From contig DF237518.1 in the NCBI GenBank assembly GCA_000708835.1, positions 1-57,875 on the forward strand: DNA of 57,875 nt. Direction: 5' to 3'. The stretch comes from Klebsormidium nitens. Taxonomy: Eukaryota; Plantae; Klebsormidiophyceae. How positions within the stretch are numbered: position 1 is the stretch's first letter; the number at the start of each line of letters is the position of its first letter. The translations under genes and the position numbers were made by a program. The notes under the pieces are model-generated. The model saw only the letters and a program-made list of their open reading frames with translations. It was not told the origin of the DNA and ran no database searches. Below are positions 12,358 to 41,080 of this stretch, in pieces.

Positions 12358-12364
12358 CCCCCCT
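12357..12364 (-). promoter_or_regulatory. Polypurine tract (AGGGGGGG) abutting segment B
   Basis: C7 run on + at 12357-12363; minus strand reads TTAGGGGGGGATAATG. Confidence 0.7.
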
Positions 12365-12624
12365 AAGCCACCGAGTTGTCCCAACGAGGGATAAGGCTTG
12401 TGACTGTACAGGAAATAACGAGTGGAAGGTTCGACTGCCCACGTGCATCGGTTAATTGGTTCTAGATTACGGCGGTGTGTTCATTGGTTTATCCTATCTT
12501 TCTTAATTAGTGTACCTAACGAATTGCCTGACTCCGTTGCCACCATACGAGTATGGCATCGGCTCTGACCCAAGATCGCGGAGCGGGGGCTTGGGAGCGG
12601 GTAGTTCCTTAGATATCACTACTG

Positions 12625-12894
12625 CTATATGTTGCCGTATCTTGCTACAAACCTGCGTGCACATGTTGTTGTGCAATCATTTTCTCCAGCGCTGACTTTT
12701 TTTTCAATGAACTCGAGCATGACATTCCTCGGGGGAGTGCTCATGCGGCGTGTAATTACAACGTTCTTGGGATAGTGCTCTGCGCAGTCACGAAGTTCCT
12801 GAAGTAATTCGGCCCGCGGACACTGTAGCAGTAGAAATTGACGCATAGTACTTGGTGTGCAATGCATCTCATTGTTTCGTTCGAGTACTTCCAA
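12625..12894 (-). CDS. Short accessory ORF between the two PPT-like tracts
   Basis: 89-aa ORF starting 5 nt after the upstream ORF stop; may be a frameshifted continuation of it. Confidence 0.3.
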   Translation of the reverse strand: MEVLERNNEMHCTPSTMRQFLLLQCPRAELLQELRDCAEHYPKNVVITRRMSTPPRNVMLEFIEKKVSAGENDCTTTCARRFVARYGNI

Positions 12895-12899
12895 CCTCT

Positions 12900-13220
12900 T
12901 TATACATTGTACTCTCTATACATTTTATCTATGAAAGCATACCATTGGTAGTTGGCATGCACCAAAACGTTTACCAGATCATGCCACTGATTAACTCGCC
13001 AGGCGAATAGTGCTTTCTTGTTTGGCCAGAAGCCGTGTTCCCACTTACATGCGGTCATTTTTCTTGTGTTGTCGTAGGAGACGTCATCAGGGCATGCTGG
13101 TGGTATGGGTGTGTTGTCAATAGGCGCGAGCTCGTTAAACGGTATGGGCTCGGGCGGTGGTCCCCAACCTGATGAGGTTGGTTGTTGGGTCGTTTCCTGA
13201 GGCGCCGAGCTGGACGCCAT
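12900..13220 (-). CDS. Trp-rich accessory ORF (106 aa), unknown function
   Basis: ATG start shortly after the upstream G-tract; Pro-rich N-terminus then CKWEHGFWPNKKALFAWRVNQWHDL. Confidence 0.45.
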   Translation of the reverse strand: MASSSAPQETTQQPTSSGWGPPPEPIPFNELAPIDNTPIPPACPDDVSYDNTRKMTACKWEHGFWPNKKALFAWRVNQWHDLVNVLVHANYQWYAFIDKMYREYNV

Positions 13221-13255
13221 GTTTTCCGCAGATATAATACAGTATCTTTGTTATT

Positions 13256-13264
13256 CCCCCCCTT
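13256..13264 (-). promoter_or_regulatory. Second PPT-like tract (AAGGGGGGG) just after the pol stop
   Basis: Minus strand AAGGGGGGGAATAA, near-identical to the tract at 12357. Confidence 0.55.
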
Positions 13265-13273
13265 ACTGAGCAC

Positions 13274-13423
13274 TCACACTACACAGCGTGGGCAAAACCA
13301 ATCTCTTTTGGGAATTCTACTGACCGGTGGATTTAAGCAATCCATGTGATAGCCTTCGCTGCAAGAATCGCAGATCAGCATCTTAGATGGTCGGTTGGTT
13401 TTCTTGCAGATTTGACAGGCCCA
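13274..13423 (-). pseudogene. PHD finger (C4HC3) at the pol C-terminus
   Basis: WACQICKKTNRPSKMLICDSCSEGYHMDCLNPPVSRIPKRDWFCPRC. Confidence 0.95.
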
Positions 13424-13429
13424 GTCCTC

Positions 13430-14540
13430 GTCGTATCCTGAAAGCGTAGTGTCCATTGTGAGATCAATGGTTGGATTATGACAGGGGGCACAATTCTCAA
13501 CGTGGTCTTTGATGGTTCTACCATCTCTTCCTTGTAGCCTGAGCGCACCACTCGGTAAGACTTTAGTGATTCGCAAAATGAGTCGGCCTACATTGACGTC
13601 GAGAGTGTCAACTTCCTGCGACGCAGATAGACTAGGTCCCCTACCTCAAACCGTTTAACCTTGGGGCTCCATTTCCCAGTGCGGGTCTTGGCGTACCACA
13701 GGGTGTCTCTGTGTTGTGCGGCTTGAAGGTTGCTAAAGGCAATCGGCATTGCCTTTCGAAACTCCTCGGCGCGGTGGGCAATGACGTCTGCCCGGGTTTG
13801 AGGGTCATCTAGGTTGACCGGGGTGTTGATCATGTCTCGGAGGCTAGCTCCCACTACTGGGTGGCGCCCAAACATTAAGAAGTAGGGGGAGTAGTCTCCT
13901 AGTGCAAGCTGCTTGGACATGCGGTAGCCCATGGCGATCCAAGGCACCCATGTATCCCAGGTGTCAACTGCGTGAGTTAGTACGTATTTACGAACGGCTT
14001 GTTTTGTGGTTTGAACGGTTCGTTCTGCCAGGCCGTCTACTTGTGGGTGATCCCGTGATGTTTTGCGGTGATCAATAAGAAGTTCCTTGCACAGTGTGTC
14101 AAATTCTCCCTAGAATTCTGACCCTTGGTCGGTGAGTACTTCTGCTGGTGCCCCAAAATGGGTGCATACTTGGAGAAAAGCCTTGGCTGTTTCTTCTGAT
14201 GTGTTATCAATCAGTGGAACCAGTTCTATCCACTTAGAGAAGTGCTCTATCATTACCATGATGTACCAAACCCTGTTGCTGAAGGAGGGAGTGGACCTGC
14301 GAGGTCACAACTCCATCGGTACTCTAAGCCCATTATTGGTAGGGGCTTGAGCAGTGAGTCTTTCACATTAAAGCTGGCTTTAACGCGATCGCATACCTGG
14401 CAGCTTGCTACCAACTGAGCTACCCGCTCATGCATGCCTGCCCACCAAAACGTGGGTTCTAATAACGAGTAAGTTCGTTTAACTCCGAAGTGGCCTAATT
14501 GGCGATGAATGTTGTGTACCAGTTCGGCCCTTGCTCCGGG
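13430..14540 (-). pseudogene. pol: DDE integrase with H2C2 zinc-binding domain (frameshifted)
   Basis: HRQLGHFGVKRTY..FWWAGM..SCQVCDR; RWSCDLAGPLP; core near 14040-14260 reads VLTDQGSEF..HPQVDGLAER; YSPYFLMFGRHP. Confidence 0.93.
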
Positions 14541-15463
14541 TGGTGGGACTCTCTTTGCGAGCCCATCGTTGGTTACTTTGATGAGGGTATGGTTGTCAAA
14601 CTTACACCCCTGCGCTGTGCGCCATATTCTGTCCCGTTCCTTGCGGGTTGTGTGGCTTGGGTAGGTGCAATTATCCTGCAGATATTGCATAGTGTTTGCG
14701 TCAGACCAGATATCAGTGATGAGTACTTCGCCCGAGTCGTCACCCAGGAGGTCTCCATCTTTATTTGTCCCTTGAAAGTGTGAGTTGTCTGATTCCTCTA
14801 TGTCATTAGTTGATTCAGCTAGGGGAATGACTGCGTCGGTGCCCGTGACGCCGGTAGTTGGCTCAGCTACCAAGCTTGCCTCTGATGGGGGAAGTGCTGA
14901 CTCAGATTGGGCTTGTGAAAGGGTCAGCTCAGAAGATTCGCCAGATAGAATTGCAGTTCCCTGAGTGACATGAAGATCGGGGGCGGCTGTTTGATCTTGT
15001 GCTTCGTGCGTTGGGTTGGCATTTGCTGGAGATGAGATGTCAGCACTCACCCTTGAGGCGAGTTGCCTTGAAGCGCATGCCTTAAGCTTCATGACGTGGC
15101 CTGTAGTTGGCAGGTCCCCCGTCGAAAATCTCTGCACGGGAAAGAAAGCAACGTGGCTTGTTGTTTCTGTGTTCAGGTCTCTGCTCTTTGAGCCTGCATG
15201 CACATGTCGGAATGCATGATGGAAAGGCTGGACTTCTCTATGGATTGATCGTCCCTGGCTGCTTTCAGTCGACTTAGCAGTCCATTGGTGACTGGCAATT
15301 CTAGCTAAGTAAGCAGCTATGATATTGGGCGCGTCAACCAAGGGTGGCTTGTGCTCTGTCACAATCCCCTTTGCTCCCATGGTCTTCGGACCATTGTGAG
15401 CCCCAATGTCTTTCTGACTAGTGACACATGGTTGCCATGATTCTGTGGTGATCATGGGTTCTT

Positions 15464-16007
15464 TCACTGACTCAAGCGGCTGAACGTGGTCCATTCTGGC
15501 GCCGGTTGAATCCTCTTCAGACGGAAGTGGGTGCGAGATAACCCGTCTGCATCTAGGTTTCTAATTCTTGACCTGTGTTTGATGTAGATGTCATATTCTT
15601 GAAGAATATTAGCCCACCTGGCGTGCATTCCTCGTAGCTTCTCGTTGGTCATCAGCCATTCCAACGGTTCGTGATCTATAATCAGAGTATACTTGCGGCC
15701 GTACATAATATCTGAAGTGGGAAACAGCCCAGACCGCTGCTAGGCACTCACCATGATAGCTCGAATAGTTCCTTTCCGTCTTGTTGCAACTGCGACTGGC
15801 ATAGGCAACCACATACTCGTTGCCGTCATCATCTCGTTGTGTGAGTACTCCTCCCAGCCCCTGCGCACTCCAATCGGTGTGCAGTTCAAACTCTCGGTTG
15901 AAATCGGGCCTGCGTAGGATGAGGGCTTCAGTTAGGTGTTTCTTCAGGGTTTCAAACGCTTCCTGACACTCAACTGTCCAGTCGTATGTAACTCCTTCCT
16001 GTAGCAA
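15464..16007 (-). pseudogene. pol: RNase H (Ty3 type, frameshifted)
   Basis: ELHTDWSAQGLGGVLTQ, VAYASRS, ERNYSSYHGECLAAVWAV, IIDHEPLEWL, DADGLSR. Confidence 0.95.
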
Positions 16008-16037
16008 GTGATTCAGGGGACTTGCTATCTTACTGTA

Positions 16038-16931
16038 TCATTTGACAAACTTGCGGTAATATCCCGCAGTTCCTAGTAAGGCTCTTAGTGCACTGACGTC
16101 TGGTGAAGGTGGAATTCGCAAAATAGCCTCAACCTTCTCTTCTCGCACGGCAGTCCCTTCGGAGACTATTAGATGCCCTAGGTATCCGACATCGGGTTCT
16201 GCTGTTCGCATTTTCTTGGGCTGGCACTTCAGTCCCCTTTCCCGAAGTCGCTGGGATACTTGCGTCAGGTGTGTCAGGTGTTCTTCAAAGGTTCTGCTGA
16301 AAATGATGAGGTCATCAACATAACAACGACAAAACGCTCTTTTTGCACGAAGGGTTTGGCCCATGACCTTTTGAAAGAAGGCGGGTGCATTCTTTAATCC
16401 AAACGGCATAACTAGCCACTCGTATAACCCATCTGCTCCCCAGAAAGCCGTCTTGCAGCGATCTTTTTCTGCAATCCGGATTTGATTGTAGCCCTGGCGG
16501 AAGTCGAGTGTGGTGAACAGCTTAGCGTTGCCTAGGACATCAAATATTTCCTCTGGTGTTGGTATCTGGTAGTGATCAGTAACACTTACCCTATGAAGGC
16601 CGCGATAGTCACCGCAAGCCCTTCGTTGTGTCCAGTCTCCATTCTCATCCTTCTTTGGTGGCATCGTGATCGGGGAGGCCCATTGTGATGTGGATGGTCT
16701 AATGAGTCCATTCTTGAGGCGTTTGGCTACTTGCTGTGCGAGATCCTCTTTTTCTGTTTGTGCCAGGCGGTATTGATGTTTGAACACTGGCGTTTCATCG
16801 GTGACTGGGATTTCGAATTCTACTCCAGGTATCGTGGTCATCTCCTTCATGCTGAAGGCAAAGATGTCCCTGAAGTTGTCTAGAAGTTCTGTTAGCTGAC
16901 TCTTTTGTTTGGGTGTCAGGGACTGTCCCAT
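16038..16931 (-). pseudogene. pol: Reverse transcriptase
   Basis: SQWASP, CGDYRGL, FTTLDFRQGYNQI, MPFGLKNAPAFFQ, CYVDDLIIFS, YLGHLI. Confidence 0.97.
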
Positions 16932-17543
16932 GGGCCAACTCCATTCTTCTGTTTCCTCTGCAGTCTTATCAGTAGCTTCTTTGCTCCCTGCAGGTGCTTT
17001 GCTCCGACATGTAGTTACTGGTTCAGGTGAGTTTGTGTTAGGTGGGGTTTTCTCAGTTAACCCTTACTTGCTTGTGACTCCTGGTCTGCTCAGCACTTGT
17101 GTTGTATCTGAGCCTGAGTTGAGAGTCTTGTGCTCGCTTGGCGAGCATTCCCTGCCCTTCCCTGCGCGTCTCAGTTGAAGTCTGGCTTCTTGTCTGCTGA
17201 GAGGGTGATCAGGGCGCTCTGCGCTTGTGTTCAACTAGCTGTCATTGCTTCCTTCCAGCGTCTTCTCAAGGTTGCCGGTTGTTTTCAAGCGGTCGTTGGC
17301 GAAGCGAATTTCGTTCTGATAGTGGTCTCCCCCCCCCCTTGCATAGGGAATATATCATCATGGGCGTTCACTATGCACTCGTGTGCGGAAATTGGGGTGT
17401 GATACAATTGAGCGTTGATTAAGTGTAGCTAGTTGGTAAAGCTCATTGTTTGATATGAGTCTGGAAGTAGGTATGTGGCTAGTTTGTGCTAGGTGAGTCA
17501 CGCTAGCGGGTCGGAGCTTGGTTAGCTGTGACTCGGCGCGCCG

Positions 17544-18530
17544 TCAGTTGAGGAAGAAGGTGTGTTGAAAGACCATGATGGCTCCCATGATGAATTTTAT
17601 TTGGAACATGTCCATTGTTCCTCCTAGCATGGGCATACAATCTGCTTCTGAGACTCGGTGATGATTGCTTGTGCCGACCATGAATCCCATGGCGGCCTCG
17701 CGTTCATTGGCCGTGGGTTCCTCCAGCTGTCCCGTGTTAATATTTGTGAGTAAGCTGTGCCCGTTATTACGGTAGGCATGGGAACCTTTGACCGTGACGA
17801 AGTGGAGAATGCCCGTAGTGGCTTCCCAATTTCATTGACTACATAATTGCCGGGCACTGATTCATGCGCGGCTAATCGAGCCTCGTGATGAGGCTCCTGG
17901 ATGTCGCTAACTGACTCGATTAGTAAACGTGTGGGCTACCGTATTCTCCAATAGTTTATCAGGAACTCCATTTGTCCAAAAGCGCCGATGGCGGTGCGCG
18001 TATGATCCAACGGCCACAGCGTCAAATGCTACACCATGTCCTAATATTCCTTTGACTATGTGATTATATTCATGGGCGACTTGTGCGTCGCAATGATCCG
18101 TTGCATCCACATTTTCAAACAGCCAGACACATGGGCCATGATATTTATACACTGCGCAGACTATCTCTACGCACTTGTAAAATAGTGCAGTGCGCGTGTC
18201 GCGCAGACCGAGTGGTCGCGTGGCTGCCGAGGAGAACCCTTGGCATGGAAATCCAACAATAATAATATCTGGTGGCTCTAGTGTAGCTATGTGTTCATCT
18301 GTGACTTCTAACAGATCCGGTGGGAGATGGTTATGACTATTTACCACTGCATCTTCCGAAATGAGGTGTGGGAACAATTTGGCGAGAGTGGCCAGCCGTT
18401 GCTCAGCCACGTCTCGGCTGCATTCTTCCAATTCACATGCGTAAACTTTTCTAATGTTTATGCCTGTGCGCACGAGACTTTTGTCGCTGCGCACAGTCCT
18501 GAACAGAGTTCCAAAACAACTAGGCCGTGG
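17544..18530 (-). pseudogene. C5 cytosine DNA methyltransferase domain (DNMT3-like) between protease and RT, about 3 frameshifts
   Basis: Motif I LVVLELCSGL (about 18490-18525); IV IVGFPCQGFS (about 18233-18262); VI WLFENV (about 18108-18125); VIII AHRHRRFWTN (about 17972-18001); IX EEPTANEREAAMGF and X MLGGTMD in a frame not in the ORF track (about 17716-17600). Confidence 0.92.
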
Positions 18531-18883
18531 CTATTTACAACCGACTGTTCATGAATGTCTACAAGATTAGGATCCAATGGAGATCCAAAACGAGCTTCTA
18601 ATTGGAGGGCCGGCTGTGCCGGCTCTGTCAAACTACGTATAGTTCGCTGAAACTTAGCAAGTATGCTATGTGTTTCTAGCTGATCTCTAAACTCTAATTG
18701 GAGCCGGGTGGCTCTCTCCTCGTGCGGCGTCACGGGCGCAGGAACTGGTCCGGTGCACAACTGTACAATGCTGATGGGGGCCTGGGAGCGCGTGGCGTCG
18801 TCAGGCGCCCTGCATATGACAAGGTAGCTTAACTAATGCGTGAGCTTGTCGCAGCGCTGATGCAGGTGTTGACCAAGTCCACA

Positions 18884-19340
18884 TTAAAAATGGATGGAAG
18901 TTCCGCGGTGGTTGCGTTTTCTTCCCACCACATGGGGTAATACGTAACGGTTTGGTGATGGGTTTAATGTTAACCCGATTCTACCAATTACGCTCATTCC
19001 TATCAAAGTTTCTTTGGTCTGTGAAGGAACTATGGTTAGTTTAACCTGGACGGTGGTCGCGGCGGAGGTTCCTGGATCAACAGAAATTTCGACTGTGTCC
19101 CAAGTGCGATCAACGGGTGCCGTGGTGACGGCATCCGCTGTGATTAAGCTGATGGCTTTTCGTTGTCGCATTTCTGGCGCAATTCCCAACTTTTTGGCTG
19201 TCCAATTGGAAATTATAACACTTTCGCAGGCGGTGTCAACGGTTAACCATTCCAGAGCAACACCGTTAATCAGGAAACAGGGGTTAGGTCCTGAATTGTC
19301 TATCCTAGGTGCGTGGTTAATCCTGACACACGTTCTGAAT
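18884..19340 (-). pseudogene. Retropepsin aspartic protease
   Basis: Upstream extension of ORF 18884-19189 reads FLINGVALEWLTVDTACESVIIS (DTA at 19229-19237); later ETLIGMSVIGRIGL. Confidence 0.8.
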
Positions 19341-19881
19341 GGCTGACCAATGACATTTTGTTTGATTTGGCATACTCAATTGGGCTTAAGAATTGTTGAA
19401 ACGACCGCGCGTGCTGTTGGGCTGAGTTGGCTTGCTGGACTGGGAGATCGCAGAAAGCCAACGGCGGTGCGTAAATTCTGTGCCTTATAGCAGAAGGCTG
19501 TTTTACTTCACACCAAGTGTAATGTCGGTGAACACCTGACGCGGTAGCATGCAGAAACTGTGATGCTAAGCACAGTCGCATGAACAACGCAACAGTCTGC
19601 CACGCGGTGCGAAACCCTTCTGTGATTTCCACATCCGTAATTGGTTTTTGAAAACTGTAAACCAATGGCTCTGGCTCTAGCAGCCAGCGAGATTTGACCA
19701 AAATTTTCAGTCCTTCCTCCAACAAAGTCAAAAGTTTGTTGGGGAGACTGTGGGCGGATGTCAAATGAAACTCTAATTCTAAATCGGCTGTTAATTCTAA
19801 TAGTCGATTCACAGCCTGCCTCTGAACAAGTGGTAATCCTCTGGCTGTGGAAGCTGGGGTTAGTTCTGAGGTGGGCAATTC

Positions 19882-22019
19882 TCATTCTTGGTTCAAATCT
19901 TGTTCCCGTGACGATTTGGCTTGGTGGGCTGTCCATCGTGATAGCCAAAACATTTTCAAATTTTGTATGGCTGTCCAAAACGTATGCGTACTCACCACAG
20001 CTTGGTCGTCGTTGTCGGGATCGTCGTCATCGTAGCGGCGGCGAAGGGGTCCCCTGGCAGGCGGGTACAGCTCCTCAGGGTCGATGGTGGCCAGCTCAAC
20101 AGGGGCTAGCAGCTTTTTCTTCTTGCGACTGGGGGGCTGCTCCGTGTCGGCCTCGGCCGCGTGGGCGACGAGCTGCTTGCGTGGGAGGCTCACGTCCTGG
20201 CGCTGGCGGTCCTTTCTCTTCTTCTTGCGCGGCGGTGCGTCCGCGCTGTCAGGTACCGGCGTCTCACGGACCAACTCCGTGTCCGTTCGCGTCGTCTTCT
20301 TGACGCGCTCCACAGGTACAGTGGCGTCCCTGTCCACGCTGATGACGGAGCGCGGGGACTTGGCGATGGGGCCTTTATTGCCCTTGCAGCGCAGCGGCAG
20401 GGGAGAGTCCTCCTTTGGGCCTGGGCCCCGGAGTCTGACGGCGATGCGCCGTCCTTGGCGGTCTAGGCCGCCGAGTGGGTGTTGTCCTGGGGGGTCTGCT
20501 GGTCGCGGGGGCCCAGGTCGTGCCCCAAGACCTCTGCGGTGGCGGCGGCGTCTCCCGCGGTCTCCTCCAGGTCAGGGCCGCCCTGATCCTGCAGGTCGGG
20601 GGCGTCCTCCGCTCCCTAGTCCTCGGGCTGGTTCTGGCCCTGGTTCTCCGGCTGACCGCCCGCAGCGGCCTGAGTGGCCGGGATGTCTTCTTCGTAGAGG
20701 GGGGCGTTCGGCCCCATGACGTTCTGGTACAGGGCGGTGACCATCTTGCGCAGGGGGATGGGGCGCGCTGGTTTGATGGGCCGGCCGGGGTGCTGCGCGT
20801 CCCAGTTCTGCTCCATCTCCTTGGCCTTGTCGATGGACAGGATGCATCGCTCGACCGAGGCGGCGTCTTGCATGGGGAAGAGGTGGTGCTCGACGGCGAT
20901 GATCCGCTTATCGATCTTGCCCGCGTGCTTTTCCTTGTTCTTGAGGGGGATGCGGCGCTGGATGAGGCACATGATGAACCCGATGTAGTCCTTCCTCCAC
21001 TGGTCCGTCATCTTCCGGAACTCGGGCAGGTCGTCGTCGTTGGTGATGACGTGGGTCTTGTGGAAGGGGCTGAGGCGGTCCTTTCCAGGGAGCGCCTGGC
21101 GCGGCCGCTGCATAGCGTTGAGGCGGTCCCGCAGGACCAGAGTGTCTTCTGTGCAGGGGGGCGGGTTCTCTGCATAGGGGAAGATGGGAAAAAGGTCATC
21201 CCACTCTTCCTCTTCCACTCCGGTCAGGTCCTCGCTGTCGGTTCCCTCCGTTTCCGAGGGAACGTAAGCGTCTCCCGAGCTATCAGAAGGACTTTCCTCT
21301 ACGGGCGATTCTGATTCTGTCCCTGAGCATGCATCTGAGCCCTCTGATTCTGACGACTCTGACGTCATGGCATTGTCCTGGACATTCATTCCTGCCACCA
21401 CTTCCGAGGGAATGTCAAGTTCCTCTAGTTCAGAAACGTCCATGATGTCGTGGGTGGGTGGCGGCTGTGACCCACTGGGCTCGCTCGCATTTTGCATTTC
21501 CGGCTTTTTCGGGTTCTGGGGTTCCTCAAAAGGCAATTCTACGGACTGCCCACCTGCTGCATTGCTTTGCTCCTTGTCCTGCGCACGCCTCTGCGCGGCG
21601 CCAGATGCCTCTGCAGCGGTCCCCCGCTTTCCCCGCTCCTCCTGATGCCTGGGCCGAAGGTTTTGTGCCATGGTGCGTGGGCGCTGTGGCGAAATGATGT
21701 GCTGGTGGCAGGGAGTAACCGCTGACTCTGCGGTTAAGCTGAGAAGAGAAGTGGCTGCCTCCGCAGCCCTTGTGGACAAGACAAATGGTGAACTGTCCCT
21801 GGATAGGGTGACCGCTCCGGAGGGAACAATTGGCTGGGTAGGCTCAGCCATGTCTTGTAGCAGAATTTCTTCAAGCCGAATGGCAGACTTGTAGTCGACT
21901 GTCAAGTCGACGTTTCCAAGCTTGGATGTAAGTTTGCTAGTCACTTTGTGACATTGGGGCATGCTCGTGCATGAGTCCGCAAGACTCGCACGTGCTGCCT
22001 TTTCCAGGTGGATTGTCAA
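19882..22019 (-). pseudogene. gag-protease linker ORF containing a GC-rich inserted coding segment (about 19996-21290)
   Basis: 467-aa ORF 20616-22019 and 151-aa ORF 19882-20337; abrupt switch to G/C-ending codons after an acidic Ser-rich stretch. Confidence 0.6.
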
Positions 22020-22250
22020 GGTACTTGATTCCTTTGGACATCCACCAGACTCAGCTGCTGGTAACTAATGTGGGGCTTCTAGCAAGTTTGGTGTTAATAG
22101 TTAACTTGATTTGAGCCTCTTCTGACTCAAGTCCTGAACTAGATTGGGCTGACGAAGTAGACCCTGTGGGGTCTAGGCGTCATTGCTGCTAACTGAGCAA
22201 TTTGTTTGGCTTGTTCCTCTGGTGACAGTGACAGTGACTGGAACCCAAAA

Positions 22251-24473
22251 TTATAACCACGGGGATCCCTTTTTGAGCAGAGCCTGGAATTCCGGGTGGG
22301 GATTCTTGTAGCTATTGGGGTTTGGTTCTGCTGGGGGTGTCCTAGGACTGCCTATTAACTGTGGATCAGCAGGATCCTTCCAATATTCATAATCCTTATG
22401 ATGTTTATTGGTTACGATTGGTGGTAGCTTGGCCACTTCTTCTAATTCCTTGGTCATTTTAATACTGCGCATATGTTTTTCACGTTCCTCCTTCCTTCTT
22501 TGGGCGTCAGTTCTGAGTTGATCTTTCAAGTTTCGGTATGAAATATGGCATTTCTCGAGCCTCAGCTTTTGTAATTTCTAGGGATCGAAAAGTGTCCGAT
22601 TTTGCAGTGTAATTGATAGTGTTACTATTGTCGTCATTTCCCCCCCCTCGCATTGGAACGAAATTTCTCAATCTCCTTGCTGGGGCGAAAACTTAATGGC
22701 ATGTCGGGATTCCGCCTGAGAAATTGCGTTTCAGTGCGCTGTCGAGAGTATTTCTTTTCTGTCCGCTTTCGTTCACGCTTTTTGGTGACAGTTGCCGGTT
22801 CTGGTTTGGTTAATTTGTCTTTATTTCGCTTGCGCTGAGCCGCTTTGGCTTGTGTTTCATCATGTATTTTATTTTCGAGATTTTCCAAATCAAATTCGAA
22901 TTGTTCAATCCTGTCTTGATATTCCACAGCCTGCGCGCGCGCCTGCTTGACATGTATCGGTAGGGGATTTTCTGATGCTATTTCATGGGAACTGGCGGGG
23001 CTGGATCCTCGGGAGGAATATGCGTTTGAGATTTAATGGCGCTTTTCATACTCTTTCCAGAGTTCCTTTTTCTGTGCGCTGTCATTGGTCCCTCGGTTGT
23101 TCCGGCAGCTGTGAACGGCTGCGGAACTCCGAGTGGGTTGATTACGTGGCCGGGTGGCCAGCTCACTGTCAGGATGTAGTGCGATGCATTTAGATGAATC
23201 ATGTGTGTTTATCCGATGATGTGTACACCATGGTTTGCCGGGTATGTGTTGATTGATAGGTCCATTTGTGACAGGTCGGTTTGGACATTGGGCAGCTTGG
23301 TGCCCCTGGCATCTGGTGACATCTCAAACATGGGCCTGGTTGAAATGAAGTGGGCGCAGTCTGCGCTGTCTTTGCACTTGTTTTATGGGGGTTACTCCGG
23401 CAGTTGGCTGCTGAGTGCCCTGTACGTCCGCAAACTTTACACTTGGGCTTGTTGCTCCTATATTTATTATCAATCTGAGGATGGTTATTGTTAGTAGAAC
23501 TATTTTTAGACGTAATGGTCTTTGGATTTAATAACTTCTCTTGGTTTATAATCTTCTCAAGCTTTTCAGCCTCTGACCGTACTAGTTCTACTGTCCATGT
23601 GCTAATGTCTTCATATTGAAACTGTAACTTTGTACGCAACTTAGACTGTATGTTCCACGGCAAAGCATTGAGTAGCTTCTCAGCTGCCTTCGTCTGTGGT
23701 TGCTTAAGGTCTAATGCTAATTTGGACATACGTTGACTAGCTGTAGTAATTGATTCATTCTCCTCCACCTTGAAGTCTCCATAGGCTTGTATCTTGGCAG
23801 CCGAATCCTTTGGATATGCCTGCAAAAGACGAGCCCACAATTCAGTGACTGGATCGCCCAGAAAGGTTGTAATTGTTAGAGGTTCTGGTGGCAAAACTAG
23901 CCGGACAGCCGTTCCGCGTTGTTCTGCGGTCTGAGCATCCCATGCAGTTTTGGCCTGTTCCTAAGTGAGTTTGCCTCTAAGGTAGTTGGATTGCAACGCC
24001 GCATTGTGTGTTGCTAACTCCTCTTCCTTTTCTGTGAGGAGGGCAAGGCAAGTATCATGGGCTGCCCCGCCCGTTTTGAACATGATCACATGAAATTTGT
24101 TAGTGGTGGTCAGCCTGTCATAACCTGCTTGCAACTTATGTGTGGCCTCGCAGGCTGCATAAGTTGAACGTAGGTTGTCCAAAGTGACAGATGATTTTGG
24201 CTCTCCTGTGAACTTATGATTAAATGAATCAAGTTCCTTGAGTGCCATCTTTACTGTGACGGATGATCCTGAGTTTGCTAAATCAAATTTTTCAGACGCG
24301 TCAGTGGCCTGAGTGACAGCAGAGGTCTCACCTCGTACGCTTCTTTGTCGGCGGTTCCCCCACTGGATAAAGGGTGGCCGCGGCCCTTCGGTCTTGTACG
24401 ATGAACCTTGGGCGTAAGGATTCTGAAGTTCTCTGCGGAGCTGGTATCCGTCTTCAGAATTTAAATTGGACAT
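22251..24473 (-). pseudogene. gag: gag (frameshifted) with zinc knuckle(s) and coiled-coil tail
   Basis: CKVCGRTGHSAANC (23400-23441), second degenerate knuckle CLRCHQMPGAPSC, capsid-like DFKVEENESITTASQRM..LLNALP; K/E/R-rich coils at 22251-22927. Confidence 0.75.
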
Positions 24474-25654
24474 GGATATCCTTTGTTGTTTCGGATATCC
24501 AAAATGTCGTTGCCGAAACTGTTTTGGGCAGCAACAATTGTGCTTGGGTGTCTGTCCAAGTCTACTAGGTTGACCTTATCCTACTGCAGAAGCTTATTGA
24601 ATTCTGCCAATAGGGACTACTTTCCAATTACTGCTTTTCCTTTGACCTTTTGGCGTTTGCTAAAAGGGATGATGCGGACAACAGAAAACTGTCACCTGTG
24701 GCTATGGATGCGGTACTTTATAACTACAGGGGTCTTATCTACTTCCGAACGCAAGGGGTGGGTACACTCCCCTTGAGCTTGCCAGTCGTGTTTATCCTTC
24801 CAAGATTCCCTTTTCAGGACGCACATCTAGTATGCTAACTGGACTCTATCACTAGCTGTTTCACATAGACTCTGAAAAGCTCAGAGCCTCAATGTCCACT
24901 CAACCTGACAGGGGGTTATAACTTTGTCAGGGGCAAATTAAAACAAATCCTGCTCCAGTGGGGTGATTTCCACTTTAGACAAAGAGCGGCATTGGCTAGA
25001 CAGCCAATGTCTCTGGTCCCTTGGATTTCCTGCGCAGTCGACAAATGGCAGCCAACAAGCAGTAAATGAAAGACTCTTCAATCAACTAATTGTAGTCTCA
25101 GGTAATTTGGGTCCAATCCCACCAGTCAGACAATAGTTCTCAGTAACTGACACAACAAAAAGGCAGCGCCTTTCTGGATCACAACCATCCGCACGTGTGG
25201 TTTTTCCGCACGATAACATTTTCACTCTACAAGTCAGTCTGTAATGTCACCCGCGCTCTACCGAGTAGTCGGCGAACCGTACATCGGGTTTTCAACGAGT
25301 GCAAATTTTCGGGGACTTCACCGTTTTTCGGAGTCCGAATTTGCCCGTAAACAGGGGCAAATTGCGATATTGCACCTATATGAGAGAATATTTTTGGCCG
25401 TAGGTCGAAATTGAAAATTCTGTGCAGTGGCTGTCTCCAGGACATCCCCCTGATGGTCTTCAACATTTTTTACGGACTTGAATTCCAAACAGTAGAGCTC
25501 TGCCCAGGCCTAAATATGTCTAAATATTGATTTTGCACTCAAAACCCCTGAAAAACCCGCTGTGAAATCGACATTTGCGTCGCAACCTTATCGTGAGGAG
25601 TTCTTGGCGCAGCCCGCTTTTCTCGGGATGGTTGTGATATTTTTGGTCCTTACC

Positions 25655-26311
25655 TTATCCCTGAAGTAGGGGTTCGTAGTAGTTGTAGGTCTTTGTCTTC
25701 CAGGGAAGGCCCTTGTAATGCTTCTGGTGATGTGGCTGGTACGGCTGAGGGTGCGGCGCGTACTTGGGAAACAGCTGCGGCGGGCGATAAGGGGCCAGTT
25801 GGTAGTGGCCTTTGTACGCCAGGTTATTGTTATCCAGTCGGGTGAAGACAAACGGGTTGTGGTACGCCGGGCCCTGATGCAGCCTTCTTGCCGCGGGGGC
25901 AAAGTGCACACGTCGGTTGCCTCCGAAGCCTGGGGGCCTGGGAGTGTCGGTGCGGTGCTGCTTGCGCCAGTTGGCGTTGTGGACCACTGGGGCAGGGGCA
26001 GGGGCAGGTTTGGGGACCCGGTTAACAGGACGGCGGTGCGGGTTGTTGACGGGGACGGTGTGTTGGCCGCTCCGTCGCTGACGCCGCGGCTTGGAGAGGC
26101 GGATGTCCGGGGTTTCCCTGATGGCTTTGTACACCCCGTGTTGTTTGGTGGTGACGTAGCGGTGTTGAAGGCCGGTCTTCCGGGCTGCTAAGCGGTGACG
26201 CTCAACGGCCTTGGTACCGTCCAGGGCTACGTGTTGGGCAAACAGGGTATCCGCCCGCGTGACAGCGTGCTGCAGCCGGGCTTGGTCGATATCGTCAGTC
26301 TGGGCTGCCAA
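25655..26311 (-). CDS. GC-rich ORF (218 aa) in the long leader, unknown function
   Basis: Open 218 codons, Pro/Arg/His/Tyr-rich; reading frame and start uncertain. Confidence 0.3.
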   Translation of the reverse strand: MAAQTDDIDQARLQHAVTRADTLFAQHVALDGTKAVERHRLAARKTGLQHRYVTTKQHGVYKAIRETPDIRLSKPRRQRRSGQHTVPVNNPHRRPVNRVPKPAPAPAPVVHNANWRKQHRTDTPRPPGFGGNRRVHFAPAARRLHQGPAYHNPFVFTRLDNNNLAYKGHYQLAPYRPPQLFPKYAPHPQPYQPHHQKHYKGLPWKTKTYNYYEPLLQG

Positions 26312-26345
26312 CTGTTGCTCTGGGGTGGGCTCACGACGGTCCTAG

Positions 26346-27222
26346 TCAGAGCTGCCAGGTGCTGATGTTGACCTTCAGGCTGCTGCGAAACGCTCTGGAC
26401 GGGCGTCCAGGGCACTGATCTGAGGTATGGAGGATTGAGTTAGGCCCGCAGCGGTTACACTGGGGCAGACTGGAATGATGGGGAGATGAGGGCGGTGTTG
26501 AAGATAGGCTGGGGACGACAGAACTCCGCCGGCTTTTGATGGCGGGGCTGATGGGGGCGTCGACACGCTCCAAGAGTCCGGGAACACTCTTTGCGTTCTC
26601 CTCCCAATTGGAGTTCTGTAGGTGGAGAATGTGGTTAGTTGTTCCAGGCGTCCGATGCACACTGGCAGCGGACACGCACCAAGTAGAATCCTGAAATGTC
26701 CAAAACTAATAGGACTGAATGGATGTTTGGATGTCCGTTCACTGTAATCTGTCGCTGTATGATTCCGGCTATGACTGGTCTCCAAAGGTCCTTCTGGACT
26801 GTTAAGCGCTGTGTGCCGACAGAAGGTCCGACAGGATCGTCCGTAAAGGTTGTCCTGAGGGGCCGGGTGAGTAATACGAATGCAGACACACTATTCCACT
26901 CCTGCGCTGAAGACTGGCACACTGGACAAGCGAGTGACTTCCAAGTTTCTAATTGCGGACCAATGTAATGTCTGATATCGGCGTAAAGTTGGTCCACCCC
27001 ACAGAGATCGTCCCAGATCCTGTGCTGATATGGATATTCACTTAGATCCCCCACAAGACCTGACTGGCGATACTGCCACGGCAGCTGCTGATCTATTCTC
27101 CGCTGAACCGCAATGGCAATTTCTAGTCTATCCGATTCCCACAATCCAGTTGGGTTTCCAACACCAAAGTTTGTCAATCCAAGCAGGCTAATTCCTACTG
27201 TGGAACTCCGAGAAAAGCTCAT
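26346..27222 (-). pseudogene. Decayed upstream ORF with a zinc-knuckle-like motif
   Basis: 195-aa ORF starting 35 nt inside the element, plus adjacent frame with CNRCGPNSILHTSDQC (26412-26459). Confidence 0.35.
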
Positions 27223-27242
27223 TCACGCGACATTTCTGCCCT

Positions 27243-27257
27243 GACTTTCATTCAAGT
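27243..27257 (-). promoter_or_regulatory. Putative self-priming primer-binding site (ACTTGAATGAAAGTC)
   Basis: Immediately follows segment A on the minus strand; perfect 15-nt reverse complement at 27815-27829 inside segment A; no TGG tRNA-type PBS present. Confidence 0.75.
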
Positions 27258-28244
27258 AGGGACGGAGGGTTTCTTTCAAGAGAGAAGCCCTCAGTGAGGG
27301 TAGAAATTATGTTGCTGAGATCTTGGAGTCACTCGTGCTAACATTCAAGGCTATCCTCACCTTACCCGCATTGTCCGTCCTTGAGGCACAACCCGCAAGA
27401 ATGGTAGTGGTACGCAATCAGTGTATTGGATATCCAAAATGATCAGGCATGAGCAAACGACAAACATGGGCACATAGCACTTACTGATTGAAAGATGGCG
27501 TCGCCGGAGGCGTGAGACATTCTGAGATGAAACGAAGGTGTAACGCTGAAGGCTTATAAGGCCGGTTAAATTACTGTCGTATTCAAACTGTTATTCTGGT
27601 TAAGTTCTCCGTGAGGTCCTTCTGCTTCCATGGTGTTGTCGTCGCTGGTACGGTACTGCTCCTTCGATTTTGCCGGTAGTACTGGCAACTGGTTTGAGTG
27701 CTCAAGGCACTCGGATACGGGGTTGAACGTTCAAGGCGCTCGGATGCTGGGTTGAACGCTCAAGGAGCTCGGATGCTGGGTTGGGCACGGGTGCCCGCTG
27801 GTGATGGATAATTGACTTGAATGAAAGTCGAATTGAAAATGGCGATGCCAATTGACTTAAGTACCTCGTGGAGACTTGCTTGAGTTTGGACGTCCAAAAG
27901 CATTGTCGTGGTGGAAATGGACGGCATGCTAATGTTGGGTTCGTACCTGGATCCGTCACGGTTACACAACCGGTAACATAGCCGGGTATGTACCCTTAGA
28001 ACGTTGTGGAAACGTCTTGGGATTGAATCCGGCAATCACAGGGATTCAGCGAATGCAACTGGTTAATGGACGTCCAATGGAATGCGTCCGTTTGTCATCC
28101 TGTTCTAGCTTGTTCGTTAGTTAAGGCATGGTTATCCTGATCATGAACATGTCTGCTTAACCTAGTACTTGCACGCTTGCGCCACGTGTTGCACGCTTAC
28201 AGGCTAGTCGAGTCGATCTGGCATCGAGGGCATATGGCATGACA
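27258..28244 (-). repeat. Terminal repeat segment A, copy 1
   Basis: Direct repeat of 11232-12227; begins TGTCATGC on the minus strand; lacks segment B on either side. Confidence 0.95.
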
Positions 28245-31200
28245 TAGATTCCCTGCTAACGGCGGGGTTCCGACCATCAGATCGCCGTCGGAGGTCCCGA
28301 AAACGTAAGCTTGACACTGTGATTGGCAGAGACTGAGAAGCATCAAGCATGTCAAGTCCAAGTCATGCTTGAAGTATCTCACCCCGAATCAACAGGTCGG
28401 GATAGCCTGTCACACGGCACACCTCCTTTAGCATCCGATGAACGTCGCACTTTGGAGCCTGGAGTTGGATACAACTGGGTCCGAACCGGGTACCAGGTTG
28501 AATACCCGTGGGTTCAGCGTGGGTACAAACCGCTGTGTACTACCGACCGATGCGCGTCGCTAAACAGTGATCTGCGACAACTTTCTTCTAACTTCAACTT
28601 TGCCCAAAGTTACCAGCAAAAACGATTTTATAATTGCGGCCGGCTGAGGTGACCGTCCGGGCGCTCTTTAATACGGTCTGCAGGTTTGAAGTTTGGCCGA
28701 ACGGTCGGGACGCGGCCGTACCTGATTCTGAGATTTTTGCAACGTGTCGGTCGACAAACTGATCAAATCAAGCATTCATTAATGAACCGTACCACGTGCG
28801 TACAGTATGTTTGAAACTTAGGTACTGTGTGTCAGGGGAACAGGGCCCGTGATCGTTTGCCGGGCACTTTTAAGGTCTACAGATCATACTATAATACTCG
28901 CCTACCGGCCTTTGATTTTGACCGGTAGGCCGGCCGCCCAAAATCTGTACCGGGGTCTGCCGGCGCTTCTCCACCCAGCCTGGTTCAGTTTACATTCAGT
29001 ACTAGTCACCAGTGTGCTCCAGCACCGGGACCTCGAAGGTGTACATCTTTTAAGTACTTGGGCCAAATTTAATGAAATTTAGTGAAATTTAGGCCGCAAC
29101 GCGGTGAACCTTCAGTGTTAGGATTCGCTCCACGGTACACTGACTAAGGTTTCAGATAGGAAACAGCCTTAGTTCGAAAAAGAAGTGTTGAGCTGGCCAA
29201 TCAGAAAGCCGTAGTTGGCAATGTCGCACCCTCGGACATCCGGCCGCCCGCGGGAGGCAGGGAAAAAGGCCCTGATCCCGTACTCAGATTTCTTATCCTT
29301 CTCGCTCCGGGACGAGCTCCCAGCGAGGGAATAGAGAATACAGCTGTGCTCTGCCCTCTGTGGATGTCCCACCAGGGTTGCGCGCGTATAGGATTGTGAC
29401 ACGTGGCGTGCAGACACTTGCTGCTGCTGCAGAAACATGTGTGCGCGCTAAGCCGCGGCGCGATATAAGTTCGACTCGCACGAAGCAGAGTTTGGCACGG
29501 GGAGTCTTTGGTGACCACGTGCGATTGCGGAGAGCCGCTCGATGAATAAAGAGTCTAGAACTACCGTAGATCGATAAGAAGGAATCCAACCGTTGGTCGA
29601 TACAAGTTAGAAGGCTTTGCGGAGAGAGACTAGCCCTCCGCTTTAGTAACGTGACTGGGCAAAGGAACTCAATATCTCATTGAGAACCTGCGCTAAGTCG
29701 TGTTTGGTCTATCGTGCAGGTTCTCTATGGGGCCTCCTTCCGGAGTCTTTTACGAGTCCTGGCGACCTGCGTCATACATAAATAAGGGTCTTTTGGACGT
29801 GGGGTAGGGCCACACAACACTTTGGCCAGAATCGGTAGAAGTTGAAAGATTTGTGGAACTTTAGCTCGTTCCTTGTGTTTCAGATTTCCTAGCTTTTGAG
29901 ATAGAGCGCAGAGGCGCTAAGAAGAGCAGGAACAGGAGATCCATAGCAGCACAGCCCAAGGGGCTAGTGCGCTGTGTAAGCACTAAGTCATTCTGTGTGG
30001 CTTTAAGGCATGACGCCTTGTTATGTTCCAGGTATTGTTGCCCCTCATTGCATGAGTGCTGCGTGACTACCGTCACTGCGCACAGTCTCCGCAGGAAGAA
30101 TGCTCATGGCTAATCAGGGAACTACCCTTGTGATGGTATAACATGAGATGTGCCCCCGAGCACAAGTCAGTGAGTGCATTGCTTGTGTGAGTGAATGAAT
30201 GATGAATGAAAGCTTCGCATATGTAATTGCAGTCTAAAAGTTGCCCAAAGCAAGTGTAATGGGACACTTGTGCATTTGCTGGAGAGCTACTAGGTTCCGG
30301 AGAGCTGTGGTTTGAAAGGCACACGCTACGCACACAAATTCCGCTGCGCAGGCGACTTACCGCGGCTTACCGCGCAGGCCTTGAGCTGGCCGCGTCGCGC
30401 CGCACGCACTAGTGCGCCGAAACTCGATCGCCCCTGCCACGTGGCACTAAACCCCGAGAGTGGGCAGTGGCCGGAGGGGGGGTGTTCTCTAGAGAATAAA
30501 CGGGGTCTGAGTCGCCCGAAATAGGATTGGATGCAACGTCATTTGAATCGTCACTTCTTGACTTCCTATTGATCATTCGGACGGTCATAATGAATCGATC
30601 TTTGTATCAAACGGTCATCCGGGGGCCACTCGATGATCTGATTTCGTCTTACAAAACCGATCATACCCTCTCTTATATCTCCCTCTTTACCACTTTTCTT
30701 CTTTTTTTCTCTCTTTTCTCTCTTCTTTCTCCATGTATCTTGGCTGTGAGTGGCTGTGAGTGGGACCCCACCTGCGATATACTAGATAATACCTATGTAC
30801 AAGGCCGAAAGTACGATCTATACACTGAAGTGCTGAGGAATGTACCAATTAAACCGTGCCGCCGAGCTGCCCATGCGTCGCAGGTTAGGTGGTTAGTCAG
30901 TTAGGGTTGGTCAGGAGCCGCCTCGGTCGAGTCAGAGCCCATAGGCAATGTAGTTAGGCAGTCAGTCAGCGAGTCAGTGAGGAGATTAATATGTTCCGGC
31001 GACCAGTTAGTCTGGTCAGGCTCCATTGAAATCGTCCGAACTACCCCCTATTGTAGCCTACAGCTAGTGCATGCAGCTAGCATTGTCCACGATTCCGCGT
31101 GTGGACTGAATAAGCGGGCCCTTCTATAGGGGAAGGGAGGGGGCCCTAAGAGGATGATGATAACTAGGCAAATCGGCGGGCCGTTTTTGGGAATAGCAGA

Positions 31201-37719: not shown

Positions 37720-39291
37720 AGTTTGATCACCTTCACCAAGGCGCAAACCTCTTCCGGGAAATCTTGAGATAGACCGAGCTTTCTCTTTTTTTGAGTGATC
37801 TTCTGCAGGTGTTGCTCGTTAGTTTTCTCTCCAGACGTTTCCGTATCCAAAGCGTGCTTCAATAGTGCTCGAATGCAACTCTTCCTGCCACTTCTGAACC
37901 TGAAGTTTCCGCTGTTCTTCATAAACCCGTCGTTGTACCTGTGGATCTGAAATGAGCAAGAAAGAAAGACGCCTGGTAAACTTAATAGGCATTGAAAGAT
38001 CAAGCTGGTGTGATCAATCATTTGCTCGTCACAATTGCGGCCCGCAACTGACGAGTCACGGTTTCTTGAACCGATTCGGATCATTGCCAGTTGTACTTCA
38101 AGCCTTGAATCATTGCGAACACTTTACAAAAGCAGATTTGAAGAGTAGACGGATCTCAGGCCTCCGCCTTCTCATTGAAGCTTTGAGTGGAATAAGTCTG
38201 AGCAGATCATAGCTTTCCGCCTGCAGTGCAACAAACGACGTCTATGGAGCTGGCTATGTATCTATGAGTAAGTTCAGGAATGGATGCCAAGCTTGGTAAC
38301 TGCCTTACCAATCTGTTGACCTCGTCCAAACGAATTTGCTTCCACTCCCAACCGTTTCGCTTTTAAGACAATATCCTTCTCACGTTGCTTTTGAATCTTC
38401 TCTGCATCGTTATGTAGCTTGTTTTTTGCAGCAATATCCAGCTCGTCTTGCCACTTGCGCGTTCGGACTTCCCGCTCCTCATAATACAAAGTTTGGCCTG
38501 ACCGCGGCATATCTGCATGAGATAATCCAACAATATAAAGATCCAACCTAGCTGCCGGGCTTCTAAATAAGTTGGACAAGAGATACACAAACATTCACAT
38601 AAAAAGGGCTCCATATCAAAACATCAACCATAGATAGGTTTGAATCTATGAAGGTCATCTGGCAGAATTCCACTTTCGCAGCAAGATCTAACTGAGTCCT
38701 GAGAGCTTGTTGTGATGTACATGTTACAAGTATTTGTCATTGAATGCCTGCCAGACTCTTGCACGGTCCACGTTCAATTTAGCTTGCAGCCGCAACTTGC
38801 AGACACGTGGACGTTCGAACTTGTGCACAGTTGAATTTGGAACTATATCAAGCTTCCCCCAAGCTTCCCATTACTGTCGGATGATTAAAAGATTTCCAAA
38901 CTACAGGTAGTTTAACCAGTCTGTTAATAGGGTCTAGAGGCTACGGAAGTTCCTAGAACATCAGAAGATCTCTAGCTGTAGGCATCACATTCGACGTGTT
39001 AGTCCCATTTTAGTGTGATCGACACTGATCAACTGATGATGCACAAAGTCACTCACCTTGACGTGAGAACTGACATTGCACCCGGGCCCAAGCCCGCCTG
39101 GCAGCTTGTCTTCGGCATAACAGCTGGATAGAGTAAAAGCCAAACAGGCTCAGTAGTATCCCAATTGTCACCACAAACGCTGTGATTGTAAGGCTGGCCA
39201 AGCCTCCTTCAGGCCCCAGTCTAGCATGTCTTGCGCCTCGTTTGCGCAGGGTTCGAATGCGTGGCCAACGGGCCCATGGCGTTTTTTTCAA
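37720..39291 (-). pseudogene. Multi-exon gene remnant: TM-anchor first exon (39057-39291) and two paralogous coiled-coil exons
   Basis: Hydrophobic LTITAFVVTIGILLSLFGFYSI followed by GTGAGT donor at 39056; exons near 38490 and 37950 follow CAG acceptors and share the motif YEE.R....KWQ.EL. Confidence 0.4.
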
Positions 39292-39550
39292 TCACTTTTT
39301 AGTAGTTATCATGCGGCTAGGTGGTCTGGCTGCCTCAACCTTCAATCATTCAATGGCTGGCCCACAAATGGCCTCAATGCTATCAATGGCCCCAACCTGG
39401 CAACTCGTCACGACGTAACTCAAATTCTGATGTGATGGCATTGAATGTTGTGCACAATGTTTGAATGTTGGTAGGTTGCCTTCCAGACTTCAACACGGCG
39501 GCTTGCGAGGCTCGCCGGTCCCCTTACGCTCCACTAAGATTTCAATGAAT

Positions 39551-39820
39551 AGGCCTATCTTGGACCCGGAGGTCGCAGAGTCACGGTGAAAGTCGCGGAC
39601 GAAAGTCGCGGAAAGTCGCGGAACGTCGCGGAGCATTGCAAGCATCTAAACATGAAACTTGCTTCAAAACATGTTTTCCAAGAGTTTATAAGGTTGCGGT
39701 GAAGGTTGCAAAGTTCGCGGAACAAAGTCGCGGAACAGTCGCGGAACAGTCGCGCAGAATCGCGAAAAGTCGCGCAACGTCGCGGGCAACTCTGGCAACC
39801 TCCGGGCCCAGGATAGGCCT
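39551..39820. mobile_element. MITE-like non-autonomous DNA element
   Basis: Imperfect TIR of about 33 bp (AGGCCTATCTTGGACCCGGAGGT.. / ..ACCTCCGGGCCCAGGATAGGCCT), internal GTCGCG repeats, flanked by ATGAAT on both sides. Confidence 0.75.
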
Positions 39821-40422
39821 ATGAATCATTTCAAATGTTGCGGGCTTGTTGCCACAGCGGCCGGGTTTCAGGAGAACGGTTCCCTTTAGGCAGCGGGGAC
39901 TGATCTGGCAGGGACTGTGACTGATGATTGATCCCTGCCCCGTCCCTGCCATGCAAGCTAGGCTGATCGATGATCGATCGACACGGTACCTACTGCGGGG
40001 ACTGACCGGTCCATGTTGACCGTAAAGTGGTACCTACCTCCCACAGATTGATACCTTGGTAGATACCTAGTACTTACTCTAAGGCACAGCCGGGCGCGAC
40101 TTAAGGTACAGTACCGGAATTACCTACCAGCGCGGTACACCGGGTACCATCTTCCAGGCCGGTTGATACTACCTACCTAGGTTACTTAGATTATAGGTAC
40201 CATGAGGTTCAAACCGTCGATGACAGGGTCGGCGGTCGCACGTCCAACTCTGGCAGTGCCAGTGGACGTGACGTCGTGACGGTCACTGCGCGACGGTCCT
40301 ACAAGGACTCGGGAGTCAGGAGTCAGGAGTCAGGACTCGGGAGCCTCAGGAGCTAGGACGGTAGGTATCCGGGTATACGGTACCTCCTGGTATGGAGGTA
40401 CGGTACCCCTACCGTCTGCTGG

Positions 40423-40846
40423 TGTAATCGAGAGCTCCCTTAAGCAATATAAGGGATCCTGATTACTACAGTGGAAGCGCTAGGTAGCTAAGAGTTGAGA
40501 AAAGTCTTGACAATAAAATTGTCCTCAATCCGGGGTCGGGGGAATGAGGTCCACAAGTGGAGAAATCCACTTTCATAGCTTGACCCAAGCTGCTCATGTG
40601 CATACATGAGCTCAGTCTGTGCGTACAGTCTATATAATAGTAATAGTATGACTTGCTGCAGCTCAGCAGTCTTGGATGAGCTTTAGCTAAGCTAAGCTCA
40701 TCTTGTATAGCCAATAGGAATCGAGTATTCTTTTATAAGATCATGTTACCGTTATAGGGGTTATCCTGTAAGTCATCGGGATAATCTAATTAAGTCTATC
40801 CTGATATCTACGGCTATAAATGCCTAGACGTGATCCACGTGTTACA
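40423..40846 (-). repeat. 3' LTR of chromovirus A
   Basis: Matches 45556-45979 with about 7 substitutions by eye; preceded on the minus strand by PPT AAGGGGGGGACTGC (40847-40860). Confidence 0.98.
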
Positions 40847-40858
40847 GCAGTCCCCCCC

Positions 40859-41080
40859 TTAAGTACCAGCAACGTCCTCGTTGCTGGGGTCTAAATTCAC
40901 TAAGTGGGCGTCGACCCACTGGGCCTCATGGAAGGGCTGGTCCCGGTAGGTTACTAAGTACTGGGTGCGTTGCCGGGGTCCGCGGCCGACGGTTCGTTCG
41001 TCTACAACACTGTCGATAGGGTGTTGGGGGTTGTCGGCGGTGAGTACCGGAGGAGGGGGTGGCGGGTCGCGGTCGGTGAA
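40859..41080 (-). pseudogene. Chromodomain, separated from pol by a 1-bp frameshift
   Basis: Alternate frame reads [37 protein letters not shown]; the paralog at 55434-56507 has the domain in frame. Confidence 0.85.

Follow-up and report, generated by a model that had tools for sequence, protein, structure and literature searches.

A self-complementary candidate primer-binding site in a split-repeat Ty3/gypsy retrotransposon of Klebsormidium nitens

The first step in the copying of a retrotransposon is the priming of its minus strand, and the element described here raises the question of what its primer could be. The element lies in a stretch of 57,875 nucleotides of the alga Klebsormidium nitens (contig DF237518.1 of assembly GCA_000708835.1), which was analysed as a whole and is called the window below; all positions are counted from its first letter. 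Directly after the 5' repeat of the element, in the place of a site for a tRNA, stand 15 nt that are complementary to a segment of that same repeat. From the sequence features assembled here, these 15 nt are probably the minus-strand primer-binding site of a Ty3/gypsy retrotransposon of the KnitGypsy-Dnmt3 type, and the primer would be the element's own RNA.

Element architecture and the site next to repeat A1

By comparing the window with itself and inspecting the junction sequences, a single minus-strand element was delimited at 11104-28244. Read along the minus strand, it consists of repeat A1 (28244-27258, 987 nt), the 15-mer, approximately 14.9 kb of internal sequence, a G-run polypurine tract (12358-12363), repeat B1 (12357-12230, 128 nt), the dinucleotide GC, repeat A2 (12227-11232, 996 nt), and repeat B2 (11231-11104, 128 nt). 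The 5' end is thus formed by A alone and the 3' end by B-A-B, rather than by two identical full-length terminal repeats. A1, and with it the element, starts with TGTCATGC, and B2 ends with GCATGACA, which is the 3' end of the element; these are TG..CA ends, and the TAGA found on both flanks (11100-11103 and 28245-28248) represents a 4-bp target-site duplication. At the junction of B1 and A2, where the two element-end sequences are joined through GC, there is a perfect palindrome of 18 bp (12220-12237).

The Pfam domains of the element lie in broken reading frames and follow the order CCHC zinc knuckle, C5 DNA methylase, reverse transcriptase, RNase H, integrase zinc finger, and PHD finger, with the DNA_methylase match (17907-18494) upstream of the reverse transcriptase, RNase H, and integrase. 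The integrase core was detected by Pfam in relatives, and in the decayed window copy the corresponding region is covered by a tblastn match of 81% identity. Two intact relatives (L005 and L091) show the same methylase/reverse transcriptase/RNase H/integrase order; L005 also contains a protease and the integrase core, and the best solved-structure match of its reverse transcriptase is the Ty3 reverse transcriptase (E = 2e-78). No chromodomain was matched by Pfam in the element, whose integrase ends in a PHD finger, and no open reading frame matched Phage_integrase (tyrosine recombinase). The order of reverse transcriptase, RNase H, and DDE-type integrase, together with the TG..CA ends and the 4-bp duplication, assigns the element to Ty3/gypsy. 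Judged by the methylase inside pol and the A-coding-B-A-B layout, both of which match the KnitGypsy-Dnmt3 type, it can be taken as a member of that type. The window copy is degenerate with broken reading frames, and therefore nothing here shows current activity. Within the element, between the gag-like and the protease/methylase regions, positions 20000-22000 have a G+C content of 62% and long overlapping open reading frames on both strands that gave no Pfam match.

The similarity between A1 and A2 ends exactly at 27258, where A1 gives way to the 15-mer and A2 to B2. The 15-mer (27243-27257, minus strand) begins at the first base after A1, with a gap of zero bases to its end, and is flush with the U5 end. 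It was searched for as ACTTGAATGAAAGTC, which has three exact occurrences in the window, one on the minus strand (27243-27257) and two on the plus strand (27815-27829 and 11798-11812). Positions 416-430 of repeat A are consequently a perfect complement of the first 15 nt that follow A1 on the minus strand, in A1 and A2 alike. Since the next base is mismatched on each side, the pairing comprises exactly 15 bp. Between the two 15-nt arms lie 557 nt (27258-27814, minus strand), which are the proposed R + U5 loop. The upstream arm in A1 (27815-27829, minus strand) is the proposed beginning of the transcript and would provide its first 15 nt as the self-primer, while the copy in A2 (11798-11812, minus strand) would fall in the 3' R region. 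A preliminary description of this DNA had reported the exact reverse complementarity of 27257-27243 to 27829-27815 and 11812-11798, which was confirmed here and is reproduced by no shuffle, as well as a long R + U5 loop of about 570 nt, for which 557 nt is the value measured between the arms.

Could such a match be a chance inverted repeat without function? A1 and A2 are copies of one sequence and 96% identical, so that the arm copies in them, and hence the three occurrences, are not independent evidence. On the other side, only 0.16 matches to ACTTGAATGAAAGTC would be expected by chance in the whole window even when up to two mismatches are allowed, and three matches were reached in 0 of 100 shuffles. 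Moreover, when the 20 nt that follow A1 were searched for duplexes with repeat A, the energy obtained was -22.2 kcal/mol, a value equalled by 0 of 300 dinucleotide shuffles of A. Together with the conservation of both arms in relatives (described below), by which the chance explanation is in practice refuted, these values leave it a negligible probability.

Signs of a conventional site were also looked for. TGG, the complement of the CCA end of tRNAs, is absent from the 40 nt after A1; no tRNA gene was found in the window or in the 52 fetched loci, and an Rfam search of 27150-28300 matched no family, tRNA included. A canonical chromovirus nested in the window (40423-45981, minus strand) served as a control: a TGG-type site stands right after its LTR, and the longest complement of its primer site within its own LTR is 7-8 nt. 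This chromovirus looks intact, with 426-nt LTRs of 98% identity, the target duplication GCTGG, a gag open reading frame, and a pol open reading frame of 1087 aa. An apparent A-B-A-B array at 38890-57532 was considered as a second test case and rejected, as it proved to be a tandem unit of approximately 2.1 kb interrupted by two ordinary chromoviruses. The unit is made up of 1.45-kb and 0.68-kb parts and occupies 38890-48014 and 56860-57532; the second chromovirus lies on the plus strand, ends near 56661, and has kept an open reading frame with integrase, SH3, and chromodomain at 55434-56507. Elsewhere in the window, positions 1-1500 contain an AT-rich, satellite-like array with units of approximately 57-60 nt around a run of 612 N (529-1140).

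Downstream of the candidate site, at a distance of 20 nt from the 15-mer, begins ORF1 (26635-27222, minus strand), whose 195 aa match no Pfam family.

The complementary arms in related elements

Relatives of ORF1 with amino-acid identities of 51-62% were found in soil metagenomes. The 15-mer is exact in L001, L002, and L004, and also in L007, and it occurs in L003 with a single G-to-A change at position 5; the U5 sequence upstream of it has diverged among L001-L004. The short contigs that carry these relatives extend only 20-110 nt upstream from ORF1, and the repeats of the relatives lie outside them. Four further loci (L005, L006, L091, and L090, the last from K. nitens scaffold DF237003.1) are cut off at the 5' end and stand outside the primer-site comparison. 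L008 was rejected as a carrier of the primer site, which is absent from this apparently rearranged contig. Within its positions 1-400, the relative of ORF1 leaves the family sequence just at the expected place of the primer site, and the contig may be rearranged or chimeric. An exact-pattern scan of the JGI metagenomes for the primer site combined with the start of ORF1 gave no match.

The other arm could be followed in L009, whose integrase is 81% identical to that of the window element and in which the G-run, the palindrome, and the repeats B1, A2, and B2 have the same layout. In its repeat A, which overall has a column identity of 55% with that of the window element, the arm is present as an exact copy (L009 3384-3398), being one of only seven perfect runs of at least 12 nt. 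The last 25 nt of the U5 of L009 are identical to the U5 end of L004, in which the primer site is the 15-mer. The exact arm in L009 and the U5 end that it has in common with L004 thus indicate that both arms are conserved in a second family, represented by L004 and L009, and the preservation of the pairing in other copies, the lack of which the preliminary description had named as a refutation, was in this way borne out.

Two other parts of repeat A are well preserved. Shortly downstream of the arm, the proposed R region holds a unit of approximately 29 nt in three tandem copies (27688-27780 in A1 and 11671-11766 in A2), and the longest block that is perfectly conserved between the window element and L009 is a 39-nt part of this array. 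A 16-nt block near the U5 end (approximately 27304-27319, minus strand; position approximately 926 of A) is also perfectly conserved with L009; it holds CTTGAATG, 8 nt that are common with the primer site, and could be an alternative partner of the arm.

By scanning the JGI metagenomes with an alignment of PHD-type integrases, 80 loci were obtained. In 29 loci (L010-L091, a count that includes the earlier-fetched L091), the series B1-A2-B2 stands directly after the PHD-integrase gene, which implies that the split repeats are a trait of the whole clade and not a rearrangement of one copy. Complete copies show the 4-bp target duplications AAGG, ACCT, and ACAA. Many of the 29 loci probably come from moss-associated samples, as the names of their contigs suggest.

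One complete element (L025, target duplication AAGG) belongs to a different family. The 16 nt directly after its A1 are unrelated to the 15-mer and are an exact complement of positions 164-179 of its own repeat A. The duplex extends to 20 bp when wobble pairs are included and has an energy of -25.7 kcal/mol, equalled by 0 of 300 shuffles. The complementarity is specific to the family: the primer sites of the window element and of L025 are matched over 15-16 nt in their own repeat and over no more than 8 nt in the repeats of other families.

A group of seven loci from moss metagenomes (L027, L039, L060, L069, L073, L076, and L088) has a common helix of up to 16 bp with an exact match of 9-11 nt, which joins a site approximately 30 nt after a TATA box to the boundary between U5 and the primer site. 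This helix is 89-92% paired in register, compared with 37-59% when it is slid by one to three columns. The single duplexes of this group are not significant, as 13-34 of 300 shuffles do as well, and the helix is AT-rich and of low complexity. Compensatory changes across relatives had been suggested as a further check on the pairing; within the moss group two pairs are changed on both sides, and the covariation is not significant (109 of 500 shuffles).

These comparisons bear on the possibility that the 15-mer binds an internal region of a host tRNA or tRNA fragment, the complement in the repeat being incidental or regulating access to the site. Three diverged relatives have the identical 15-mer and a fourth differs from it in one base, as a fixed external partner predicts, and such strict invariance across diverged relatives is equally expected of an external host-encoded primer. 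Half-tRNA primers are known in plant copia lineages (PMC6317226), and one may see in the complement of the 15-mer the 3' two-thirds of an anticodon arm whose anticodon is UUC (a tRNA-Glu mimic), a reading to which we give little weight. However, having no TGG, the site is not complementary to the 3' terminus of a tRNA, 27150-28300 gave no Rfam match, and the conserved block coincides base for base with the stretch that is complementary to the repeat. Furthermore, the unrelated site of L025 matches its own repeat strongly, that of the moss group does so weakly, and the sites of the window element and L025 match the repeats of other families less well. A tRNA-derived primer is thus quite improbable, and a self-complementary site in place of one for a tRNA, as the preliminary description had supposed, is supported by the missing TGG, by the 15-mer and arm conserved in relatives, and by the separate complement in L025.

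The G-run directly upstream of B1 is conserved in L009, L025, L060, L073, and L090. With the 15-mer flush against A1 and the G-run flush against B1, the repeat used in reverse transcription would be B+A and its U5 end would be 27258, the position already given as the U5 end in the preliminary description; the same adjacency here and in relatives agrees with it. The palindrome at the B1/A2 junction reads GCATGACAGCTGTCATGC in the window element (12220-12237), GCACGACAGCTGTCGTGC in L009 (approximately 2940-2960), and CATGACAGCTGTCATG in L025 (approximately 10340-10360). It has been altered on both sides between families and yet remains a palindrome, a perfect one in L009, which fits a functional recognition site of the integrase.

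Transcript start, leader folding and the proposed cycle

If the arm is to act as a primer, it should lie at the 5' end of the RNA. A TATA box (TATAAAAG, TATAAAG or TATGAAAG) is present upstream of the arm in relatives; from the start of the box to the arm there are 34 nt for L009, 26 nt for L025, and 30-32 nt for the elements of the moss group. On this spacing, the RNA is predicted to begin approximately with the first base of the arm, and transcription of the window element would therefore be expected to start at or near 27829. A start near this position had been proposed before; the boxes 26-34 nt upstream in L009, L025, and the moss group fit it, but the window copy itself has, at the place aligned with TATAAAAG of L009, only the degenerate motif TACTTAAG (27863-27856, minus strand), which starts 34 nt upstream of the arm and whose role as a TATA box is suggested by that alignment.

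The predicted folding of the leader is consistent with the pairing. For the 611-nt leader of the window element, the minimum-energy and centroid predictions agree in pairing the arm with the primer site (z = -3.6), and further long-range helices adjoin the arm in the predicted fold. Predicted leader folds also pair the arm with the primer site in L025 (z = -4.9) and L039 (z = -4.0). The same pairing is predicted for a composite in which the leader of L009 was joined, for folding alone, to the primer site of L004, the two loci having an identical 25-nt U5 end.

Such folds could also belong to a genuine long-range RNA structure that serves something else (for instance packaging, dimerisation, regulation of ORF1 translation, or masking of the site), with priming achieved by another route. 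The whole 611-nt leader folds better than shuffled sequences and has more long-range helices beside the arm, ORF1 starts just 20 nt after the site, and both the cleavage and the primer are inferred rather than observed, all of which would suit a structural role. Against it, the helix of the window element and that of L025 end at the very base that adjoins the U5 end, which is the geometry that a primer needs; no alternative primer site is visible, and the arm is located at the RNA 5' end predicted from the TATA box, an arrangement known from Tf1 and Tj1 (PMC4600332). We therefore regard a role confined to structure as unlikely and continue with self-priming as the preferred reading.

On the self-priming reading, a TATA-type box inside repeat A would be followed, approximately 30 nt further downstream, by the transcription start, which would lie at or close to 27829, and the first 15 nt of the RNA would fold back over the 557-nt R-U5 loop to pair with 27257-27243. 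The RNase H of the element would then cut after the paired stretch, and the reverse transcriptase would extend the new 3' end through U5 and R. From there, the steps familiar from LTR elements could follow, the plus strand being primed at the G-run that adjoins B1.

The self-priming site and the polypurine tract, taken together, imply that the ends of the cDNA and the ends used in integration do not coincide. This difference points to integration from a two-repeat circle at the internal palindrome, a step for which the support is indirect. Extending the proposal to the whole clade, we tentatively suggest, as a possibility rather than an expectation, that Ty3/gypsy elements with PHD-type integrases in streptophyte algae and bryophytes follow an undescribed cycle, in which self-priming like that of Tf1 is combined with a B+A repeat that is circularly permuted relative to the integrated ends. 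If this is true, the self-priming site and the G-run would set the ends of the cDNA and the palindrome those of integration, and a DDE integrase would open a two-repeat circle at an internal palindromic site.

The clade in question is characterised by a PHD finger and split repeats, and some members (the window element, L005, and L091) contain a methylase. The presence of the same self-priming signature in a separate clade suggests that annotation pipelines may underrate how common priming independent of tRNA is among elements of the green lineage. Programs that accept an LTR element only with a tRNA-type site and a pair of identical LTRs would be likely to overlook the elements of this clade or annotate them wrongly. 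In addition, the self-priming site can serve as an independent marker of the U5 end, and the mismatch between the ends of the cDNA and those of integration allows a direct test of the unusual integration route.

Comparison with known systems

Compared with Tf1, whose arms are 11 nt long and whose U5 loop is short, the window element has arms of 15 nt and a loop of 557 nt, a length that far exceeds the loops of Tf1-type elements and is a point against the self-priming reading. That the 5' end of the mRNA acts as the primer has been proven only for Tf1 of Schizosaccharomyces pombe; the same has been proposed for Tj1 of S. japonicus (PMC4600332), and it is predicted for the Tf1/sushi group (PMC4600332, PMC6317226). 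The likeness to Tf1 and Tj1 lies in a primer-binding site next to U5 that is complementary to a 5' segment of the element's own mRNA (a prediction in the present case), in the lack of a recognisable tRNA-type site, and in an arm that belongs to the 5' repeat and lies beyond the promoter. On the other hand, the window element has a PHD-finger integrase without a chromodomain, a methylase in pol, and split repeats (A1...B1-A2-B2), and RNase H cleavage and priming have been proven in Tf1 but are inferred here. A chromodomain at the C-terminus of the integrase, which characterises the Tf1/sushi phylogenetic group, is lacking as well. The element thus appears to be a further case of Tf1-type self-priming as a mechanistic class, recognised here by its sequence features.

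Within the green lineage, self-priming has been predicted from sequence for the Tcn1 chromoviruses of mosses and club-mosses and for the TAR lineage of Ty1/copia (PMC6317226). Like the window element, these are LTR retrotransposons of green-lineage hosts in which no tRNA-complementary site is recognised and which are predicted to prime themselves. Tcn1 elements differ in having chromodomains and ordinary LTRs, whereas the clade of the window element has PHD-finger integrases and split repeats; the searched text of PMC6317226 contains no mention of such a clade.

The repeat geometry (A1-internal-B1-A2-B2) is that of DIRS, Ngaro, and PAT elements (PMC8969392, PMC7192593), and the primer of DIRS-1 is stated to be unknown (PMC8969392, PMC7192593). 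Those elements use a tyrosine recombinase and produce no target duplication, whereas the window element has a DDE-type integrase, TG..CA ends, and a 4-bp duplication. A combination of this kind has been described in K. nitens itself by de Mendoza et al. in 2018: in PMC5890265, KnitGypsy-Dnmt3 carries Gypsy genes with a Dnmt3-type methylase inside pol, and the legend of its Figure 4 presents the repeats as arranged like those of DIRS (A-coding-B-A-B) and the genes as Gypsy-like. A term search of that paper found no occurrence of 'primer binding', and the paper appears not to analyse priming; the self-complementary site next to A1 thus appears to be an addition to the published description of KnitGypsy-Dnmt3.
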